DNA of 64,000 nucleotides, taken from Auanema rhodensis. Its lineage: Eukaryota > Animalia > Nematoda. Below, piece by piece: positions 1-19,406 of the stretch. Within the stretch, counting starts at the first letter, position 1, and each line of letters starts with the position of its first letter. Both the position numbers and the translations under genes were made by a program. The stretch lies in contig OZ059898.1 in NCBI GenBank assembly GCA_964057225.1, positions 8,618,001-8,682,000 on the forward strand, written 5' to 3'. The notes beneath the pieces are model-generated. The model saw only the letters and a program-made list of their open reading frames with translations, did no database searches and was not told the DNA's origin.

Positions 1-1013
1 CAGATACTACAGTATTGCATCCTCACCAAAACACAATAATAAGAGAGTATGTTTTCTTTTAGTTATTTATTGATAATATTAAAATGGAAATTTCAGGTTG
101 CTGTTTGCGCTGTTGTTACAAGATATAACATCGGAGATCGCCAGCTGAAAGGAGTCTGTACAAATTATCTTGTTGATAAGGTTTGCTTTTTTTAAAATTA
201 TTGTTATAAAATAATATATTTTTTAGCCTGCTGGTCAAAATGTTGCTATTTATGCCAGAAAATCGACTATGAGATTACCTCACCGCCAGACCAATCCAGT
301 AATTATGATTGGTCCTGGTACAGGATATGCTCCATTCAGATCTTTCATTCAAGAAAGAGCTTTCCATAAGAAGAATGGTATAGACGTTTGCATTTGTTTA
401 ACTTCATCCATAATTCTTCAGGGCGTGAAACTGGAGATATGTTCCTTTATTACGGTTGTCGTCATCCTGATCAAGACTTTATTTATCGTGAAGAACTTGA
501 AGAAGCTGTCAAAGAAAATGTGGTTACCAAATTGTTCTGTGCTTTCAGTCGAGCTCAAGATAAAAAAGTCTACGTTCAGGTTTGTTTATATACTTTATTT
601 TTTATTACTGTTTTGTTTTTAGGATAAACTTTGGGAATCTCGCGATATTGTGTACAAGGCTATTACTGATGGAGGATACATTTACGTTTGCGGGTAAATT
701 TATTTCGATTTCTCCAATTGATTTTCAAACCCAATATATGAACATTTCTTGCAAAAGGAAAATGACGTTATTTGTTCACGTGTAATTACGTCAAGACGTG
801 CTTCAGCATGCTAGAAATCGACTTACATGTCATATAATATTACAAAAAAACGAAAATCGGTTTTTCAGTGACGCTCGCTGCATGGCCCGTGATGTTCAAG
901 CCACCCTTCTTCGGATATTTAGAGAGGAAGGTGGTAAAACAGAGCAGGAGGCTGCCGCTATGTTTAAAGATCTTGAGAAACAGCGTAGATATCAAGCCGA
1001 TGTTTGGTCTTAA
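1..1013 (+). CDS. emb-8: NADPH-cytochrome P450 reductase, 3' part (5'-truncated by the window). Exons 1-46, 97-180, 227-377, 422-579, 623-693, 869-1013
   Basis: Spliced translation gives [62 protein letters not shown] and C-terminal RYQADVWS*, the FAD/NADPH-binding motifs of CPR. All introns are GT-AG. AATAAA at 1305-1310. Confidence 0.95.
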
Positions 1014-1341
1014 ATTTTATAATTTGCTAATATTTTTCATACATTTCATAAGCTAAACTTTCAATTTTCATTTCTGTCTAGCATTAATCAGGCATATTCT
1101 GGAAAGTTTTCTATCTTCTTTGTACTGCTTTTAATATCCTTACTAGAAATAATCAAATTCTACTGATTTATCAAAATTTTTTTCAAAGTAACTTACTAAT
1201 CATTTAAAGAGCTTTTTTCATAAATTTTTAATTTTTTTCATCAATCATCGCTATTTCTTAATTTTTCCCAGCTTGCGGGTATTTTTTTAAAATAATTTAA
1301 TTCAAATAAAGAAGTTATTATGCTTTATCATTGTACATTTA

Positions 1342-1603
1342 TCACCAGAGGGAGCCCCAGACATGTGATAAACTGAACCACTCATTGGTACTGAGACGTT
1401 TCGTGCTGTTGCTGTTTGAAGCATCACTGCAACAGGAAAAAATAGGAAAATTATAATTTTTCTAACTAAATAAGGTTTTTTTCTACTTGTTCAAATTTCT
1501 ATTATAAAATAACTATTTACCTGATTGAGCAGGATGACAGAGATACAAGACAGACAAGAAGAAGAATAAAGGAAAGCAGAAAAATCCGGGAAACAAAAGC
1601 CAT
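1342..1603 (-). CDS. Small secreted neuropeptide-like precursor, 55 aa: MAFVSRIFLLSFILLLVCLVSLSSCSISDASNSNSTKRLSTNEWFSLSHVWGSLW. Exons 1603-1521 and 1426-1342
   Basis: ATG at 1603 opens a hydrophobic signal peptide. Donor AG|gtaaat at 1521/1520 and acceptor ttcctgttgcag| at 1427/1426 bound a 94-nt intron that joins in frame. A KR dibasic site precedes a 17-aa W-x6-W peptide ending at TGA 1344-1342. Confidence 0.78.
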
Positions 1604-2028
1604 CTCGGTGAAGCGAATAGTCAAGAATGATCAAAATTATAGTTATAATAGGCGGTTTAATAGATTAACAGCGTCGTCCGTTGGGTAGGTTCTCAGGTTC
1701 TGAAGAAGAACTGTGAATGTTTTTCTTGAACGAAACCAGAACCTAAAAGCGAAACTGAAGGACAATGGGTTGATGAATGATGATGATATAACTATACATG
1801 GAATTAATAGGAACGCCTGTATGTACATGCCATGATGAAAACAACTGTATAGATACTATACAGAAAGCGGCAAATTGAATCATTTCATTATAGTCTTTCA
1901 AGATTTTATTGAGACCATTCGAATATTCTAGCTTTTATTTTTACCGATTTATTTGAAATATCAAATAATGCAAGATATTGAAATGTGTGCTAATTTCGAG
2001 CGCGTACCTTTACAATCGTACAACAAGG

Positions 2029-2150
2029 CATATATTTTTGAGGCTATTGGCGTAAATTCAGATAGGAGAATCATCTAGAATCATCTAGGAGAATCATATA
2101 TTTTTGAGGCTATTGGCGTAAATTCAGATAGGAGAATCATCTAGAATCAT
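2029..2150. repeat. Exact 56-bp direct duplication (2029-2084 and 2095-2150) with a 10-bp spacer
   Basis: CATATATTTTTGAGGCTATTGGCGTAAATTCAGATAGGAGAATCATCTAGAATCAT occurs twice at a 66-bp period. Confidence 0.95.
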
Positions 2151-3218
2151 TGAACGGAACCTGAAATAAATGCAATAATACCATCTAGAGTTAACTACAA
2201 TTTCTTTACTTATCTAGGATATCAGAAATACTGTTTTATACATTTTCTGTTTACTGATATAGTTTTCAGGACCAGGATTTTTAACGCTCAAACTATTATG
2301 TTATTTCTTCATAACAAGTCTGTATAATGTATAAGATGGCCAAGATAAAAAAAAGTAAGTGAATGAAGCTTATTCTTGTCAGGTATTTAGTGTTTAATTG
2401 CCTCTATCCCACGATTTTCACCTGTCCTGTTTCTGGCTTAATTTCGAACGCCTATTACATCTTCGAATGGTACTATCCATTTCATTCTATCTTTTTCTCT
2501 TTTTCTCTTTTTGTTTCTCTTTCTCTTACTCTTTCTCTTTCTCTTTCTTCTCCTCTTCATCTTCATTTTCATCTTGATCTCCCTAGTCATTCATGGGCTT
2601 ATCCCTAGAGTGTTTTTTTGCCTTTTCTCTTTTCCTCGAGGCTTTGTACAACATGACTGAACAGCTACAATCCTGATGGAAATCAAGCCACGTTTATCAC
2701 TTTATTGAATTTGCTGCTTCTCAAACAAAAATCCTAATTGCTTGTTGCACCTGCCACGGATTCAACTTTCCACGATATCTTGTTTGAAGTAGTCCTTAAT
2801 TCAGAACATAAGCTTGTCACTACATACTACCATGAACGTGTCACATCACCCATGACTATTTAATTTAAGTATCTTCTTTTCTTGTTCTTTTGATTACGAT
2901 TTTCTTAGAAGAAAATAAAAAAATGAATATTTATATTTTAAAAAACACCTAAGTATTAGTTTAATTTTTTCAATTATAAAGTATTTTTTCAAATCATTGG
3001 TGGTTTGTTCATTGTTTTTGTTTTGAAATATTTTTCGTAAGATCTATAGAAAGTTTAAAAGTTTAACTGTTTTTTTTTCCTGACATCCCCTAAGTTTTGA
3101 TGTTTCTGTTTTGAACAGCATGAGTGTGATGAAATGCATCATTTTGTTTTACATTAAACTTGAAGTTATAAGCAGAATATATTTGTTGTTTTTAGGAGTG
3201 CGGTCAAAATAAAAACGA

Positions 3219-3302
3219 ATGCTCGTGCTTTATCCCTCGCCCTCCATATCAACTCAGCCAGCGGTGTCTCTACATGGTCATTCGTTAATACAGCTGGATA
3301 AG
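3219..3302 (+). CDS. sup-26: Candidate alternative first coding exon of sup-26 (MLVLYPSPSISTQPAVSLHGHSLIQLDK, phase 0)
   Basis: tttag acceptor at 3195, ATG at 3219, open frame to AAG|gtccgc (weak donor). Phase fits the exons at 4660 or 10948. Confidence 0.45.
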
Positions 3303-4276
3303 GTCCGCTAATTTTCTTATTATTAAATATCAAATTAGTAAAAGAGAGAATTTTCATTTTCAAAGATAAGGTTTTTTAATCAAAAATACATAATATTCGT
3401 AGTTTCATCGCGTGTACTTCACATGTATACTCCCATATGTTTATCTCGTGTGAACTCACATCATCTCATTCGTTTGAGTTGGAAAGAAAAGATGAGATAG
3501 TGAGAGTTCGCATCTTTGAATTTTTTTTCACATGACGCTCCTGATACACCACCAACACCTTTTGCATTTTTCACCAGTTATCTTAATCTTATCTTTTTAA
3601 ACTGGATATTCTTATCTGTTTTACCTATTGAAATTTCACTAGTTTTTTTTATCTAATGGCATAGTCGTAATATTACCTTTTAACGTCAAACAAAAAGATA
3701 ATATAAGTTAGCTATGTGTTATCCAATTGTTGTTGCTGTAAATCCGAAAAAGTTTAATTCGAATAACCTTATATAATATTTATCTCGTGGTTATTCTATT
3801 TCTATATCCCAGTCTGTTGAATATTATTTCTCTTTGATATCTAGTCGCGCCATAAAGACGTTAAGTTATTCCGAACCTAAGACTGTGATTGGTTAAGAGA
3901 GAAAGGAAAAAAGAATGTCCATAAGATGAAGATGAGCAGGTGCACTAGTGTCAAGCCTGCGTCTCATTCACACTGGTCATTTGGCTCTCCTTAAATCATG
4001 TGTTCCCTCAACGTTCGTTTATATTGTGGTACTGGCTCTGCTTTCTCCTTCGGCTATGTCAGTTGTCTGCATCTCTGGATGCTCGTCTTCTTCACTTTTC
4101 CCTTTTTGGTGTGGCAACACACGCACTCTGTACCCACGCGGGCGGTTGTGACTCAGTTTCGAAAGGAAATACAGGCTGATGAGGAACTAATGTATTCTAC
4201 ACTCATTACATTTGGTGTTCAATCTATTTAACTGTACTTCTTTGTTTATAGAGATTTTTAAAATTTTCTTGTAGTT

Positions 4277-4303
4277 ATGTGCTTATCAACAGTTCCTGTC
4301 GAG
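4277..4303 (+). CDS. sup-26: Candidate alternative first coding mini-exon of sup-26 (MCLSTVPVE, phase 0)
   Basis: ttcttgtag acceptor at 4274, ATG at 4277, donor GAG|gtgatt. Phase fits downstream exons. Confidence 0.4.
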
Positions 4304-4659
4304 GTGATTGTAAGAACATCTAATCATCTTTGCTTTTTAATTTTCTTCTTTTCCTTTTTATTTCTATTACTCATATTCCTATTCGATACCCTTATACACA
4401 TTCATTGGTTTTTGAAATGTTGTTAAAGAACAAATAGCTCACTTGTATATCTTGCTCATCTGTACAGTTTTTGTATCAACACAGTCGTTTCATTTTCTCT
4501 TTCATCATATCTTTTATTTTTCATTCTCGTATCGTTCTCCTCACTTTTTTATTGATTTTTCACTATTTTATGTTTTAACTGAGTTCTGTTTTTGTCCGAC
4601 TCATTGTCATTGTCATTTATTTCTTCCGTATTGAATCTTTAACCGAGTTCTTGTGACAG

Positions 4660-7600
4660 ATGCTTTCCATGGATCGCCCTTCTCTACCACACGTGCCTCT
4701 TCAGAATCAGGATGGTCTTACCTTGCGCTTCAGCCCCACCGCAAAGAATACGGTAGCTTTTTTTTCCTTATCCTCTTAAAGAAACGACAGAAAGTTATGT
4801 TTTTATGACTTTCTTCTTCTTTCCTCTAAGATATTTTCACTATCATATTAACTCTTCTTTTTGACATGTGCATATTATGCTGCTAGCTTTATCGGCGGAA
4901 TTCTAATGGCTCATTTGTTTCTAAACATTTAATATTCGTCTTCTTACTTTTTTTTAGTTTCTCTCGTGTAAATAAGTCATTTATTGATATTAAATATCCT
5001 TATGCAATTCTCACATCAAAAGATGCATGATTCTTCGATTCATGGATTTTTAAAACTATTTTTCTGGAAAAATTCGGAAATGTAGTATTCCCGACTACAA
5101 GATGCCACACTTTCGGTTCAAACCATACATGCTCATATTTCTTGTGGAATTCGACGTACAATTTCGGTCAATATTTCCCAGTTAGATCGTCTCTTCGATT
5201 TCATCAGTACAGCAAGAACCGTCAGCAAAGTTGGTCTCAATCTTTGATCTGAATCTTCTCTTTTCTTCCTTTTATAGTTGTCTTCTTCGAATCTTATCAT
5301 CCTCTCATGTTGTTGTATACATTGACAATGAGAGTGCTGATGTTTGTCCCGCTGCATACGCTGCCCTCCCCAAACCCCTCGCCCATCTAAATGTTTTACT
5401 TGATTTCACAAGGCTACGATATATTGATGGGCAGTTTTTTTTTGGTTTTCGTTGTCTGCTTCAGCTGATTTAACTGTATGGCCTCGAATGATGGATATCA
5501 TTTGCTGCCCGTCAGGCGTAGACCATCGTTTCATATATTCTGACAATATTGAATGAATAAACGACAGAGTTTCTATGTACAGTGGTGACTCTCCGTTGGA
5601 GCAGCTGCGCGATAAGGTTTGAAACAATAAGTAATCAATTTGATATAGTGCTTTTTCATAACTCACATTTGAACTTAGATTGAAATTTAAAATTAATTGT
5701 TAATAGCATGGTAATAGCTAAAAGGTTTAAAGTTGTGATATAGAAAGACCATTTCTCAAAATATGTAATGGACTGATTCTGGTATCTAATCATGACCATC
5801 CGAGCTTTTTATCGCAATACTCCCTCTTGTATTTTTTTCTCTATATAATTTGTAATATTCTACTTTTCGATATGTCAAAATGATATAAAAGTCTTCTTTT
5901 AATCTGATTTTGTTTCATTTTCATGACTATCTATGCCCCCCCCCCAATATTAAAGCATTCTTAGTGTTTTGAAATCTTCTTGAATAATTTTCGAGTCCCC
6001 TATGGTATTGATTGACTTACATATTACTAACGATATTGTCCTAGTAGAGCCCTTATATTCACTCAATGATCTTTATACATATCCGTACTCTTTACCTAAC
6101 CTACCTGTTGTCTCTTTAGCTATTTTTGTGTCAGTATTTCCCTTAAATGATCTTTGATCATCTATCCCAATGGGATCACATAAAGTGAGCAATCTTGCCG
6201 ACTACCTTAGTGGGCTTGAGAATTTATGCGAGATAGAAGAAGATATGAAGATATATAAGAGAAAAAGAAAATAAACCTTAAGTAGTATTTAAGTATTGAA
6301 ACTTTGATCATTCATTACTTTCTTCTATTCAAGCTTTTCTCTCTTATTTCAACATATTTTTATTCAATCTAATTAATAAAATAGTAAGGAACTCTGTTAA
6401 ACGTCTTCATTCTTACTTTATGAGATAAAGCTATATCTCATGGTTTTTTTGATTTTTGTTACTTGACTTTTTTAAACATTCTCTTGTTGGTTCTTGATGT
6501 AACTAGTCTCAGCTCACTGAAACTACCGTAATTTTTTTGTTTTGTTTCCTAGATGAATATTAGGTCGTGTTCTTTCTTATCTATAAATTTTTCTAACAAA
6601 GATTGAACAGCTTACAGAGGCTTCAACGTAAGTCATAAAACTTAGCGTTATGTTCAAATTCTAACGTCATTGTTCTCTTGACTACTTTGATCAAATATTA
6701 TGAGGAGATATATCCGTTCTGACTTTGTTCTCATCCAACCAGTAAGAGACGATGATAGTACAAAATACCAAAATCGGAGCAGCAACAGCCGCGGGGTCTA
6801 AAGCAGATGGTCTTGTGATGAAAAAGCCATCTGGGCACCTTTCCGTTTCTCTTTTATCCTTTCCCTATCTCTCACAACAACAAACCACCCACAACGATTG
6901 AAATTCGCTTCTTATCTCACTTTTGTACTAAGTACTATGCGGTTACTGATGTATGGTCAGAATATACCCTTCGCGTTTTCAATGAGTCTCATTGGATTTC
7001 AGGATAGCCAGAGAGCATTTTTCTATTAGCAAATCTTTCATGATTGTTTGGCATCTTTTTCACCTATTAGTTCATGATCATGACTAGCCAACGCCATCAA
7101 GAGTTGTCCTTGAGCGGATGACGATTCCACCACCAACCTGATTAGGCCCAATGACGGCTCGCTTTTGGCCTCTCGGTCAGCAGAGGCAACATCCGATTCG
7201 TGTTTTTTCGACGTCTGATTTCATCTTTTTCGTGTTCGTCAATCGATTCTCATTGTTCAGGTAGTTTTACAAAAACGCGAAAAAAATTCCTTCTGCAGTT
7301 CATCTCTTTCCTGTGACCCAACTTAAGTTTTCTTTGTTTTTTACGTGATTCTTGCAGTGACATTTCTACAAGCCGAACTTTAAAAATATATCTTTCGGTT
7401 TTCATAAATCTCAACAAAGATTAGAACTATTTTTAGTTTTTTTTAATGTTTGGGACAAAATATATTTTATTTAACAATAGTTTAAAAATTTTATTTAGTA
7501 AATACATCTTATTGAAAATTAGGTTAAAACTAAATGTTTAAGTTATCTGAAAAGCTTTGCCTAATCATTGTCGTTTATGAACAGCATTTATAACAATTTA

Positions 7601-10094
7601 AACTATTTTTGCACTTTTCTCTATAACTATTTGTTGGTAACACAACTATTTCTATGCAACAACCTCTCAGTTTATCGTTTTCGAGCTATATTTTCTCCTT
7701 TTCCTTGATTTGGTTTTCCAAAACATTGGATGAAAACTACGAGGTCGAACAACACGCTTCAAAACCGGTTCTTTCTGCTCATCATAAGGATGTAAAGATG
7801 AGCCAAAATTCTGTCATTATTTCTGAGAATGAAAATCTAAAAAAATATCAAATGATTCCTTGCTCTTTTCTCAAAATTTTTTTGGCTACTAACATATTAT
7901 GCAAGAGCGAGCATAATCGCTGTTGTTCTATCAAGTCTGTTGCTGTATATAAGTTCGAATGGTGTGGGATCGCACAGGCCGATAGGCCGGGTGGGGTCTT
8001 GGCCAATCGCCAACGGTCGCCCGCCAAGACGAACCCCGTGACGTACTGACGCTCTCCACCTATCCCACTTGTCAACATTCCTTCTCGCTTCTCTTAAACG
8101 TTGTTGCCTCTCTTCCTCATTTGACTGTCTTTATTGTAACATTGAATTGTAGAAGGTTCCAGAAACTTTCAGTTAAGAAACAACAACTACGTTGACTTGT
8201 TTTCGATTTTAAAATTCATCAGAATCTACGATCATCTCGTTCAAACTGTTTGCTTTTAATATATCTCTATCTACAATTTTATAGCTTTTAAACATTCTAG
8301 CAACTCCAATCTTAATTATAATACTCTACTTCATATAAAAAGAAATATTTTAAAAACTACAAATATAAGTATGAAATATAATCTCTTAAAATCATGATTA
8401 CTTCATAATTTAAAGAATAATCACATTCCTTTTCTACAAAAAAAATCAATTCAAAATAATACTCAAGACATTTTCTTTAAACTTATACAAACTTTATGAA
8501 AAATCTTTGATCTCTCAGCTCTGCAAACGTACTACCTAGTCTTCATAGAGATTTTCAACGGTCTTGAAATTTCCTCACAGATATTTGTTTTTTAGCTTTT
8601 CTTACAACTGTTCATTGACCGTCTTCCTTTTATAATTAGCTTGTACAATTAGATCAAAACAAATTTATTTCTCCTAATTGTCACTTTAAGTTTATCATGA
8701 CTTTTATCTTTAGTTACCTACGTTTTTCTCATTTTTCAGCTGAACTTTCTGTCTTTTGACAATTGAACGTTACCTCTCTTTCTGTCGATGCTCAGCTGCA
8801 ATCGGGTTCTATTTACTTTTTCCTCAAAAAAAACCTCAGTCTTCTGCTGTTTCCATGTCTCCTTTACGTTTCTTTCATTGATTCCTGCTAGTAACATCTA
8901 AAAAATCGTCAACTTATGTTTTTCAATTCTCTGCAGTAAAAAATTCAAAGATTTCTGAATTATTGATGCAACGATACCTGTACTACGTGATTCTCTGATA
9001 GTAGGTTGATACGGATGTTTATTGTAATTACAACTTGCGCTTCCTACAGCTCAATGAACTTAGCAGTCTGCTGTGATCCTGACTTGACCGCCTGACCCAA
9101 CCTACTAAAGCATAGTCCATTCCAAGTTGATCATCGAGTTTGCCAGTATCGATTGCATCTATTCTCTAATAACATCCACTAAACGACTCACTCTGAGAGT
9201 CCGGGTATTCCGGTCTTTCTAACGTTCACGTTTATCCCTTTATAGCTAAAAACGCAAAATTGGCGCATTTTACGACCTTTACTTGGGTCACTGTTGTTAT
9301 TGTTTTGGGCATTTGTTTTTCTAGTGTTCTGCGATTTTGGTACAGTAGTGCACAATCGCCAGAAATCCTCCTAATATCCAGATACAGTGCTCAAAGCCAA
9401 CCAGCAAACGCCTAGGAACTTTATAGTTTGGTCGTTTTTATTATGGTTCCCAGCACGCCCACTTCCGGAATTTGTTTGTTATGATTTTTCGTTTTCGAAA
9501 CTTCCCGCATTTCCATATGGGATCCCATAAGAGGGCAAATCTAAGGCATATTACCGACAATGCTCCCATGTTATCCTAAAAAGGATACTAAAGCTTGTTA
9601 ATGTTTATATTATGTTCTTACTGATTTTATTTGCTGAATTTATTTGAGCTTAGTTCAATTATGCGAAACCAACTCATAATGAACTTTTTTATTGAGAATT
9701 ATCAGTAGCTTTGAGAGTCAATAACGACATCTGCACTTTGCTTGTATTTCCTCTTCTGATATCTTAGCGATAGGCCTTTAAAGATTTTGATCTTTACACT
9801 CTGTTTCTCAGCCTCTTAGTATATATTGTATCATACATCTGTTAGCTTTGTACGATTTACATTGGTAGTGTTGTTGGAAATTTTGCCAATTTGCCAGCTG
9901 CCACAGGTTGTCCCTTTTCGTTTTTTGTTTAGAAGACCAATCTGTTCGAAATGAAACTGAGAGATGGAAGGAGAACGATAAATTGCTGCATTTTTTCGTT
10001 GTCTGAACTTTAAAATTTATTAATGAGCCGACTGGTTTGAACTGAGCAGCTATTATTTTCCGCTAAAGTTTCAAAATAATAGTTGTATTATATA

Positions 10095-10144
<50 letters not shown>

Positions 10145-13100
10145 CTTTGGTCTCAATCGTTCAAATTTTAAAGTAAGATATCTATGTATAGCTGTTCGCT
10201 ATTTGTATTTGATTCCATTGCAGTTCTGTAATGATTTACTTAAGTTTTCTATTGTCTTATGACTGTTGTTGTGCTTTGGTTGTTCAACTTCACCCGCTGC
10301 TGTTGCCTGCATGTCTTTCTGCGCACTTTTCAACCCTGACACTTTTTCTTCGTTTTTTGTTATTCAGTTATTCGGTCAGTGTCCCTGCTTCCTGGGTCCA
10401 AGCCCAACAGTGTATCCTAGTCACGAGATGTTCGTGGTCTTCCCTCTGTGACTGTCTTTTTCCTTATTTGGAAATACTCATTGTCAGCCATGCGTCAGCC
10501 TAGTTGTAGCGGAGATAGTAAAAGGGGTGATCGAAGAGGAAGAGGTCGGCTGACTGGGTTTGTCCGTGGTGGACTTGACCCTCTCGTCTCTTTCCATTAC
10601 AGTCTGCTGCGCTCTTAATTCTCTGCACTCTCTTCTGGGCTGTGTCAGCGTCCTCTCTTCTCCTCTGTGTTAGCAATCAGCCAAGGCCTGGCACGTGGCC
10701 AAACATTTTTTGGCGTTTGTCCAACTGCCGAATTTTCAAGTTCTCTTGTTAAATCGATAGATTTTTGCGCCTTTTTTTGACTTACATGGAAGTCAGCTGT
10801 GCTATGTTCGTATGTTCCATCCGATATAGTTCTGATGGTCTGGTTCTTAACGAAAATTTACGTGAAAGAATCCTTTATTGCACTTTCTCTTCTTTTTTTA
10901 TCTTTCGAATGAACATTGTGCTGATGATTCTGATTTAATGATTTCAGGTTTCCCTACGAGACTCGCAGTTGAGCCGACACCAGTTAAGTAGTGTCAGACT
11001 TACTACTAATCGTTCTTCTCAAAAGTGAGTTACTTTCGAAGATTTTTCCGCTTAATGTAGTTCTGAACCTGTTCTGGATGCTTTCTACAGTTTACCTGAA
11101 ATTCGGCGCAATAGTAGTCGCTCATCAAATGTTCCTCATTATATTATCATTTGATTATTTCTTTATTCTAGTATTCATTAAGCTAACTTTTAATTTTTCA
11201 CTATGTTATCATTGCTGTGCATATTATTATCAAACTTCATTTAAAATCGTTTAAAAACTTTAATTCTGAGCAAAACTATTTTAACCGTTTTCTATATTCT
11301 TGACCGTCCAATGGGCCTTGTATCAACGAGACACTGGCCTCCATTTTCTGTTGTTTACGCGAATACCGTTCGGAGTTCGTTTCTTTTGGTTGACCAATGA
11401 TCTCTTGAATTGACAGATGAACGACGACGTTTACTTATAGTTTGAATCCTTTTTAATAATATTTTTGGTTTTTTTAAATCTTATGTCCTCAACATGCTGA
11501 CATGCTTTTTGTATTGAATACAAATGGGGAACTATTTTTGCAAATAACTTTTAATCAAAAAAAAACAACTATTATTCCTATTTTAATTATTATTTTTCAC
11601 ATTTTTTTCGTGGTTTTAGTATCTTTATTATATTTTGGGTGGTCTGTGCTCTATGTAGAACTATTTTATTGATCCCACAATTTCTCCATCAATTTCCAAG
11701 TCCCCAATTGATTTGCATAAAGTAAAAAAAATCTATGTATGGGAAAATTATCTAATGTAAGTATTATGCATTACCATATTCTCTTACTGACCCTGTTGTC
11801 TCTGTCTGTTTTTTCAAGAAGTGCTATTGTTGTTAGCAGGAATTGTTCAATATTGCTATTCTATATTATGTGCTAAAGAGGGTTTGCTCACTCCTACTTG
11901 CCATATTATCAACTTGCATTATACATTAATCTCATTTCCTTATTTTTTCTTCATATTCTTTTTTGTTTAATTCAATCAACAAGTTCTGAAATTTTATAGT
12001 TCGCATTGCGATCAACCGGCTCAACGGATCAGCATGTCTCCGGGACAGAATCCGCAATACAACAACAACGGAAACGTCTACGGAGTACCTCCACAAGTAG
12101 GCGGAGCTCCACCTCAATCTCAGGTTCAGCGTAATCCAAATGGAGGTGGATTTTATCAATATGTATGATTTTTAAAATGTGTACAAGTTATTTATGTTAT
12201 GTTACTTGCAGAACAATAGATCTGGATATTATGGAGGAGCTAACGGTGTTGGGATGGCCGGTAGAACAGGCTTTGGATTGCCCAGAGATGGTACCCCAGT
12301 TCAAGATGTACCTCTAAGTGCTGTAAGATACTCCTCACTAAAATTCTTTTCATTGTTTTGTTTTTGTTATCTCAGACTAACCTGTATATCCGCGGTTTGG
12401 CTCCTGATACTTCTGACGATTATTTGAGAAACATGTGCAAGCAGTATGGACCAATTGCTTCTACTAAAGCCATTATGGATAAGACCACTGGATCATGTAA
12501 AGGATATGGATTCGTTGACTTTGAAAACAGAGAAGCTGCTCAAAGAGCAGTTGAAGAACTGAACTCTAGAGGAATTCAAGCCCAAATGGCTAAGGTTGGT
12601 GTTGTGCTTCTGATCATAATTGTTTTTAAAAACATATATTTTTTCCTCCCTAAGCGAAGGCAATTTCAGCTTCAACAGCAAGAACAAGATCCAACTAATC
12701 TCTATATTGCAAATTTGCCAGCTCATTACAATGAACAGCTCTTAGAAAACGTTTTGGCTCCTTATGGAATGGTTATCTCCACTCGTGTTCTTCGTAATGC
12801 TGATGGACAAAGCCGCGGAGTAGGATTTGCTCGCATGGATTCAAAGGTATAATTTGTTTTGTTTTTTTATATATTCATTCTATTTAGGAAAAATGTGAGG
12901 AAATTATCGAGGCTTTAAACGGCAAACGTTTATCTGATATGACTAATGAGCATCCACCTCTATTAGTGAAGCAAGCAGATACTGGCAGAAAATCAAACAG
13001 AAAGAGAAATGATATCTCGTTCGAAATGGGAATGTTCCATACTCAGGTATAATGTTTTACAAGTATTCTGAATATGCGTATATTATAGCAATTCGTGCCT

Positions 13101-15388: not shown

Positions 15389-19406
<4,018 letters not shown>

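Follow-up and report, generated by a model that had tools for sequence, protein, structure and literature searches.

We describe a small two-exon gene on the minus strand of a 64,000-nucleotide (nt) stretch of the genome of the nematode Auanema rhodensis (contig OZ059898.1 of assembly GCA_964057225.1, positions 8,618,001 to 8,682,000; this whole stretch is called the window below, and positions refer to it). The gene lies at positions 1271 to 1755, it is transcribed and exactly spliced, and it encodes a precursor of 55 amino acids (aa) whose C-terminal core is kept under purifying selection, with the same gene structure and beside the same neighbouring gene, in a second nematode lineage. On balance we consider it probable that we are dealing with a true micro-gene whose protein product is a small, secreted prepropeptide of the neuropeptide-like protein (NLP) type of nematodes, and that it belongs to an uncatalogued family.

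The frame opens with an ATG at 1603 and runs through 27 codons, MAFVSRIFLLSFILLLVCLVSLSSCSI, followed by AG and then by the GTAAAT of the intron; it resumes at 1426, after 94 nt, as (S)DASNSNSTKRLSTNEWFSLSHVWGSLW-TGA. The joined open reading frame (ORF) has 168 nt and reads MAFVSRIFLLSFILLLVCLVSLSSCSISDASNSNSTKR / LSTNEWFSLSHVWGSLW-stop. These are the exact coordinates and the frame that a preliminary description of this DNA had put forward from the sequence alone, and its remark that an ORF track misses the gene also holds, i.e. the plain ORF list of the window shows the 55-aa ORF in fragments only. The coding part of exon 1 (1521 to 1603, 83 nt) comprises Met1 to Ile27 plus the AG of Ser28 and specifies a signal-peptide-type N-terminus with an n-region MAFVSR, a hydrophobic core of 16 aa and the small residues SSCSIS. 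The intron (1427 to 1520) is of the GT..AG type (GTAAAT...TTGCAG), lies in phase 2 and has a GC content of 20%. In the coding part of exon 2 (1342 to 1426, 48% GC) there follow the spacer SDASNSNST with an N-glycosylation sequon (NST), the dibasic site Lys37-Arg38 (1396 to 1401), the predicted mature peptide LSTNEWFSLSHVWGSLW (1345 to 1395; 17 aa, free C-terminus, pI about 5.2) and the TGA stop at 1344-1342. The central part of the peptide, W-FSLSHV-W-G, is a W-x6-W-Gly motif encoded by positions 1354 to 1380. The coding parts are flanked by a 5' untranslated region (UTR) of about 152 nt (1604 to 1755) and a 3' UTR of about 35-70 nt (1271 to 1341, 21% GC), and the GC content is 39-48% in the 5' UTR and the exons as compared to 20-21% in the intron and the 3' UTR. 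No paralog of the gene was found within the 64-kb window, and Rfam and tRNA scans of the window gave no matches.

The evidence for transcription consists of assembled contigs from four RNA-derived runs (X1-X4) of the source organism, aligned to positions 1-5000 of the window. The joint 1426->1521, which skips 94 nt and appears as CT..AC on the plus strand (GT..AG on the minus strand), is present in contigs of all four runs; a spliced transcript across this junction is what the preliminary description had named as a check of its proposal. The same contigs provide a positive control, as all five GT..AG introns of the neighbouring plus-strand gene for NADPH-cytochrome P450 reductase (CPR) are removed in them, as well as a negative control, since positions 2506-3173 and those past 3341 have no depth at all. 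Such long uncovered stretches indicate that the RNA runs derive from cDNA rather than from contaminating DNA. Separate contigs of X2 (1271-1426 joined to 1521-1755) and X3 (1309-1426 joined to 1521-1736) correspond to an mRNA of about 390 nt; their ends at 1271 and 1309 delimit the 3' UTR, and contig ends at 1753, 1755 and 1754 in three runs place the 5' end of the transcript at about 1753-1755. The 152-nt 5' UTR contains no ATG, so the ATG at 1603 is the first one of the transcript. In this whole-animal RNA, the assembler depth of the peptide gene is about 6-8% of that of the neighbouring housekeeping CPR gene.

An ortholog was sought by using the last CPR exon and related database fragments as anchors and by examining the CPR-flanking DNA of other nematodes. 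It was found in ENA contig L006 and in the Logan contigs L010 and L011 (two 69-kb contigs, 98.8% identical to L006), where it lies on the strand opposite to CPR, tail-to-tail with it and about 150 nt past the CPR stop. The two genes can be compared feature by feature: the ATG is at 1603 in the window and at 2859 in L006, exon 1 has 83 and 56 nt, respectively, the introns have 94 and 40 nt and are both GT..AG introns in phase 2, the stop is TGA (1344-1342) in one and TAG (2672-2670) in the other, and the products have 55 and 49 aa. The product of L006 is MLPFAILLLVAFLIFSAG-S-APILPESVPQIPQRLSNGSWFSLSHLWGPL. In both genes the intron divides a Ser codon as AG|T directly after the hydrophobic N-terminus, which in the ortholog has a core of about 12 aa followed by S-A-G|S. 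The CPR proteins of the two species are about 70% identical to each other, each is 70-72% identical to those of strongylids and 66-69% identical to that of a Caenorhabditis-like contig, and a CPR tree (118 aa) leaves the relationship of the two lineages without resolution. The second strain of the ortholog species (L010, L011) keeps the ORF, and its differences from L006 are concentrated in the 5' UTR and in codons 2-3. In the 62 nt upstream of the ATG there are 8 differences (L006 2860-2921 vs L010 10801-10862), codons 2-3 read Leu-Pro in one strain and Ser-Ile in the other, and the remaining gene, including the intron, has one synonymous difference.

The core reads RLSNGSWFSLSHLWGPL-stop in the ortholog and RLSTNEWFSLSHVWGSLW-stop in the window. 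Over its 17 codons, 12 residues are identical between the two species, as compared to only 28 of the 51 bases. Seven of the conserved codons contain 12 base differences, all of them synonymous, and these include switches of codon family (Ser AGT/TCA, Arg CGT/AGA, Leu CTC/TTA and TTA/CTC). In a simulation with random changes at 23 of the 51 bases, none of 200,000 trials retained 12 residues, and outside CPR blastn detected no nucleotide similarity between the two loci. The retention of 12 of 17 residues on 28 of 51 bases, with synonymous-only changes in the conserved codons, indicates that the sequence is coding and under purifying selection. Thus the gene is protein-coding and old, and selection acts on the core RLS-x3-WFSLSH(V/L)WG-x-L. 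The spacer, in turn, is unrelated in sequence and length between the species, and conservation begins exactly at the Arg; a spacer that is not conserved before a conserved Arg and peptide is the usual pattern of a propeptide. The signal-type N-terminus and the short spacer are as the preliminary description had them, the spacer being without conservation in the ortholog. The same description had made its proposal depend on conservation of the Lys-Arg site and of the Trp spacing. The spacing (W-x6-W-G) and the Arg are kept in the distant species, but the Lys is replaced by Gln, and the last Trp is not conserved either. With the spliced transcript and this conservation, the proposal largely passes the check that it had set itself.

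From these features we infer that the precursor loses its signal peptide, is secreted and processed at the Arg, and yields a signalling molecule, by the following route. The mRNA of about 390 nt would be translated from its first ATG, and the N-terminal hydrophobic segment would lead the product into the secretory pathway and be cleaved around Ser23 to Ser28. The Ser/Asn spacer would then be removed by a cut after the conserved Arg (Lys-Arg in A. rhodensis), and the 17-aa LSTNEWFSLSHVWGSLW would be released with a free, non-amidated C-terminus. Finally, the conserved core may act as a putative extracellular signal on a receptor. Measured against what is expected of NLP precursors, a signal peptide is recognised in both species by a heuristic analysis of the n-, h- and c-regions, and the peptide is under purifying selection. 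As for the processing site, the Arg before the core is invariant and the spacer is not conserved; KR is replaced by QR in the ortholog, without support from upstream basic residues. The Lys-Arg of the window species is a classical proprotein-convertase site, and the Pro-Gln-Arg of the ortholog is a possible, unproven monobasic site.

The 55-aa precursor had no match in a word-indexed set of 5.8e9 proteins and no phmmer match among 1.84e9 representative proteins, and an exact look-up was also empty. Pfam gave sub-threshold signal or transmembrane noise only, including weak matches to small membrane proteins, and there was no match in PDB. Degenerate DNA patterns compared to metagenome contigs produced no match in one search and four chance matches in another. 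A match to an already named nlp gene, which according to the preliminary description would have removed the novelty, was not found among nlp-1 to nlp-98: the 4-mers NEWF, WFSL, VWGS, GSLW, SHVW and EWFS are absent from all sequences and alignments of these genes (McKay et al. 2022, PMC8764417), and the precursors of NLP-97 (NPYSW) and of C. elegans NLP-1 to NLP-84 are unlike the one described here. The conserved 6-mer WFSLSH and other motifs of the peptide were not found as a peptide in the literature searched. Fourteen nlp families were added in 2022, and new nlp families are regularly found. The best reading of the sequence data is that the gene would add a new, lineage-restricted member to the NLP-type peptide genes of nematodes.

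It is instructive to compare the peptide to the myoinhibitory peptides (MIPs, or allatostatin-B peptides), to which the preliminary description had likened it. The defining mark of MIPs is a C-terminal W-X5-8-W-amide, and they are cut as peptides of 9-12 aa from multi-copy precursors (PMC6380545; PMC11004728), and a small aliphatic residue precedes the amidated Trp (PMC6380545). In nematodes the consensus is P-(D/E/H)-W-x-(D/Q)-L-G-W-x-W-G-KR for NLP-42 and W-x-x-x-x-(G/S)-L-W-G-KR for NLP-38. The Trp spacing is within the range of MIPs in both species (W-FSLSHV-W here, W-FSLSHL-W in the ortholog), and the residue before the second Trp is aliphatic (Val and Leu, respectively). However, for three Trp in 17 aa the chance of a W-x6-W is 22% and that of a W-x5-8-W is 64%, so that the spacing alone is weak evidence, and what matters is that two lineages have conserved it. 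The C-terminal Trp-amide is absent: the peptides end as W-G-S-L-W-stop here and as W-G-P-L-stop in the ortholog, and no basic residue follows the Gly. Instead of 2-7 copies of 9-12 aa with dibasic flanks, both species have a single copy of 16-17 aa. A relationship of the precursor to those of NLP-38 or NLP-42 was detected neither by word search, nor by phmmer, nor by shared 4-mers, the power of such comparisons being limited by the shortness of the peptides; by eye, E, W, L, W and G alone align with NLP-42. Because the defining feature, the Trp-amide, was tested and is missing, the gene is not filed as a MIP gene. The peptide is also single-copy and has no detectable precursor homology in either species; the membership suggested at the outset is not supported, and on sequence grounds we do not regard the gene as a bona fide member of the MIP/allatostatin-B family. 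What stands of the preliminary description in this respect is a W-x6-W-G core without amidation by the standard route, in one peptide copy. A resemblance to PDF peptides (KR-x-S-x-x-E plus hydrophobic residues), noted by eye, was also dropped, since nematode PDFs are near-invariant and amidated.

The similarities to NLP-38 (MIP-1) and NLP-42 (MIP-2), the ligands of SPRR-2 and SPRR-1, respectively, are those of general design. The precursors share the logic of a signal peptide and basic sites, the peptides share W-x6-W followed by Gly, an aliphatic residue before the second Trp and a Leu three residues after the first Trp (W1+3), and in the window species only there is also the acidic residue of NLP-42 before W1 (E here, S in the ortholog). 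In contrast, the new peptide has no basic site after the Gly, where a conserved short tail, G-(S/P)-L(-W), is found instead; there is one copy rather than 2-5, its length is 16-17 and not 9-12 aa, the interior FSLSH is unlike the family consensus, and homology of the precursors is not detectable. Ascaris suum NLP-42C (ALGGSVSPQWESSGWTWGEQTFPL...) also has W-x6-W-G with non-basic residues after the Gly and is predicted to be non-amidated and C-terminally extended. NLP-42C is, however, a degenerate copy amid canonical amidated NLP-42 peptides, while in the gene of the window a canonical copy is missing and the extension has remained short and conserved.

In outline the architecture resembles that of the Drosophila sex peptide (Acp70A), which is made from a 55-aa precursor encoded by a two-exon gene with one short intron, has a W(X)8W motif at its C-terminal end with three more residues behind it and no amide, and binds the MIP receptor through its two Trp (PMC11017328). 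Common to both systems are a precursor of about 55 aa, two exons, one short intron, a signal peptide encoded by exon 1, a middle part that varies and a conserved C-terminal W(X)nW that is followed by Gly, a few residues and a free C-terminus (PMC11017328). The outline of a sex-peptide-like gene is present, with n being 6 rather than 8. The differences are that sex peptide has W(X)8W and a sperm-binding N-terminus, that it belongs to a different phylum, and that there is no sequence homology. Sex peptide contains a Cys24-Cys36 disulfide, and the nematode peptide, unlike it, has no Cys. A second group for comparison are the single-peptide non-amidated NLPs of C. elegans, NLP-63 (...RRQIFSRKFW-stop), NLP-41 and NLP-68. 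These share with our precursor the succession of signal peptide, spacer, basic site and one C-terminal peptide, whose last residue is aromatic or Trp and has a free carboxyl group; they have no sequence similarity to the window peptide. The idea of an amphipathic helix was not supported, as the hydrophobic moment of the 17-aa peptide is not above that of shuffled sequences.

Other explanations of the gene have to be weighed against this background. A divergent non-coding transcript of the bidirectional promoter of the adjacent RRM-protein gene, with an ORF that is a chance product of a pyrimidine-rich exon, would agree with the distance of about 45 nt between the 5' ends of the two transcripts, with the CT-rich exon 1 in which all three frames are open, with a codon-usage score that gives no coding support, and with the frequency of about 5% at which shuffles yield a first-ATG ORF of at least 55 aa. 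A signal-like N-terminus occurs in 0 (strict rules) to 9 (relaxed rules) of 170 random ORFs of the window, and taken together such internal statistics are only suggestive. The decisive evidence for coding is the conserved syntenic ortholog. The ORF, the intron phase and the core are also conserved in a species whose peptide gene does not adjoin the RRM gene; the far-side neighbour is the RRM gene in the window and a methylmalonyl-CoA mutase gene in L010, which excludes that the peptide transcript arises as a mere by-product of the RRM promoter. The changes in the conserved codons are synonymous only, and nucleotide similarity is otherwise undetectable. A non-coding transcript is thus already strongly disfavoured and hardly credible. 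The product might also be a single-pass membrane micro-protein with an uncleaved signal anchor and its Trp-rich tail at the membrane interface. Trp-rich segments are often found at such interfaces, the hydrophobic stretch of the window species extends over about 16-21 residues, and the weak Pfam matches included small membrane proteins. However, the hydrophobic core of the ortholog, with only about 12 residues followed by S-A-G|S, is too short for a transmembrane anchor and looks like a typical cleaved signal, so that a cleaved signal is favoured; moreover, the hydrophobic segment is poorly conserved in sequence and the tail is conserved. We consider this possibility very improbable.

Two further alternatives concern the fate of the secreted product. 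The whole product of 27-32 aa could be functional without further processing, e.g. as an excretory/secretory, epidermal, intestinal or reproductive-tract factor from non-neuronal cells. Such a role would be consistent with the change of KR to QR in the ortholog, where no flanking basic residue would assist monobasic cleavage, with the NST sequon in the spacer of the window species, and with a depth of about 6-8% of CPR, which is fairly high for a gene confined to a few neurons. Conservation that starts exactly at the Arg after a wholly unconserved spacer fits a discarded propeptide, and the look of a cationic antimicrobial peptide is not supported by a near-neutral pI of 5.2 and the lack of significant amphipathicity; we think an unprocessed factor unlikely, although it is the alternative that we take most seriously. 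The other one is a derived MIP-type ligand, analogous to sex peptide, whose W-x6-W core binds an SPRR ortholog with a G-S-L-W or G-P-L tail, as agonist or antagonist. Two distant lineages keep the W-x6-W-G and, directly before its second Trp, an aliphatic V or L, and several positions of NLP-42 and NLP-38 are matched, i.e. E/D before W1 (window species only), Leu at W1+3 and (L/V)-W-G. Sex peptide, 55 aa from two exons with a non-amidated W(X)8W that binds the MIP receptor, is a precedent (PMC11017328), Ascaris NLP-42C is a natural non-amidated, extended W-x6-W-G copy, and the MIP-receptor paralogs SPRR-3 and T21H3.5 of C. elegans are still orphans (PMC11004728). On the other side, both species lack the defining Trp-amide, each precursor has just one copy, of 16-17 rather than 9-12 aa, homology to the NLP-38 or NLP-42 precursors is not detectable, the interior FSLSH is unlike the LGW of NLP-42 or the NGL/NSL of NLP-38, and W1 is preceded by an acidic residue in one of the two species only (E vs S). 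In addition, W(X)nW is common by chance, as seen from the 22-64% given above and from the thousands of such motifs in intergenic ORFs of the fly (PMC11017328). A derived ligand of this kind therefore seems quite improbable, and the roles at SPRR receptors that the preliminary description had suggested, i.e. agonist, antagonist or seminal signal, are speculative. The related proposal that some nematodes have a sex-peptide-like, single-copy, non-amidated W-x6-W-G-x-L ligand for a G-protein-coupled receptor (GPCR) of the MIP/sex-peptide-receptor family, which would be independent of the MIP genes or radically diverged from them, is in our view a long shot.

The interpretation as an NLP-type prepropeptide has its own weak points, and the following observations speak against it. 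The gene was found in one other lineage only. Downstream of CPR, no ortholog was found in Nippostrongylus brasiliensis (L007, L008; 10 kb) or in the Caenorhabditis-like contigs L014-L016 (about 9 kb in one contig), nor past CPR in Teladorsagia circumcincta (L013) and the Logan contigs L005, L012 and L017, nor in Cylicostephanus goldi (L009), where the contig has an N gap, four of the contigs searched being shorter; these absences concern the CPR-downstream position only, not whole genomes. In the Pro-Gln-Arg site of the ortholog no basic residue is present at -4, -6 or -8, and processing at the Arg is uncertain there. The calls of signal peptide and cleavage site come from our own heuristics, with rules written after the candidate was seen. 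Finally, the codon-usage score without coding support was trained on just 346 local codons, a set so small that we judged the score uninformative.

As for the surroundings of the gene, its convergent neighbour is CPR (emb-8-like), whose last exon and stop (868 to 1013, plus strand, stop at 1013) served as the conserved syntenic anchor. Over 1271-1318 the 3' UTRs of CPR and of the peptide gene appear to overlap by up to about 45 nt, CPR contigs reaching 1278-1318, and in two of the four runs (X1, X4) the two transcripts were merged into single contigs by the assembler. The CPR tail has an Asn-to-Cys change as compared to the GDARNMARDV of the other nematode CPR tails that were fetched; this is a strongly conserved motif of the NADPH-binding domain. 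The gene order around CPR varies by lineage. It is RRM(-) ... CPR(+), peptide(-), methylmalonyl-CoA mutase(-) in L010 (1-20282) and CPR(+), HIRA(-) in the Caenorhabditis-like contig L014 (1-10191); HIRA is also the convergent neighbour at the emb-8 locus of C. elegans. Only the tail-to-tail pair of CPR and peptide gene is common to the window and the L010 species.

On the other side lies the divergent gene for a highly expressed RRM protein (RBMS/sup-26-like), a neighbour not conserved in the ortholog-bearing species. Its first exon or exons (1800 to 2354, plus strand) start about 45 nt from the 5' end of the peptide gene, i.e. the two genes are in a bidirectional-promoter arrangement. The gene extends over 1800-3304 and from 10950 onward, with introns of 841 nt (2355-3195) and about 7.6 kb (3305-10949) and with the RRM coding exons at about 12358-12852. 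Its first exon contains a direct duplication of about 67 nt (about 2028-2160), which is in single copy in a contig of run X3 (joint 2028->2095, where 56 nt fit both sides); a polymorphism in copy number or a collapse during assembly may be the cause. Further away, at 18768-19088 on the plus strand, there is an ORF with a HAT-repeat sequence typical of the splicing factor PRP6. The window is gene-poor and its exons are small, with only two ORFs of at least 150 aa in 64 kb.

Work to deorphanise peptide GPCRs, a class of candidate anthelmintic targets, starts from the catalogues of nematode neuropeptides. Since these are compiled by homology to genes of C. elegans, families that are absent from C. 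elegans are missed. The gene described here, which none of the searched protein collections contains, contributes one candidate ligand family whose conserved core, WFSLSH(V/L)WG, is clearly defined. The gene is shared by two deeply separated lineages, yet it was not found beside CPR in Caenorhabditis-like or Nippostrongylus contigs. In a more general sense, synteny anchored on CPR, combined with the counting of synonymous changes, can confirm micro-genes that escape statistical gene finders and are missing from protein databases. The evidence for the gene itself is unusually clean, and the link to the MIP-receptor family is testable. The finding raises the question whether an amide-free, MIP-like motif of two Trp still addresses MIP-type receptors. 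If the sex-peptide-like reading were true, protostomes would have evolved an amide-free W(X)nW ligand for the MIP/sex-peptide-receptor family on more than one occasion.

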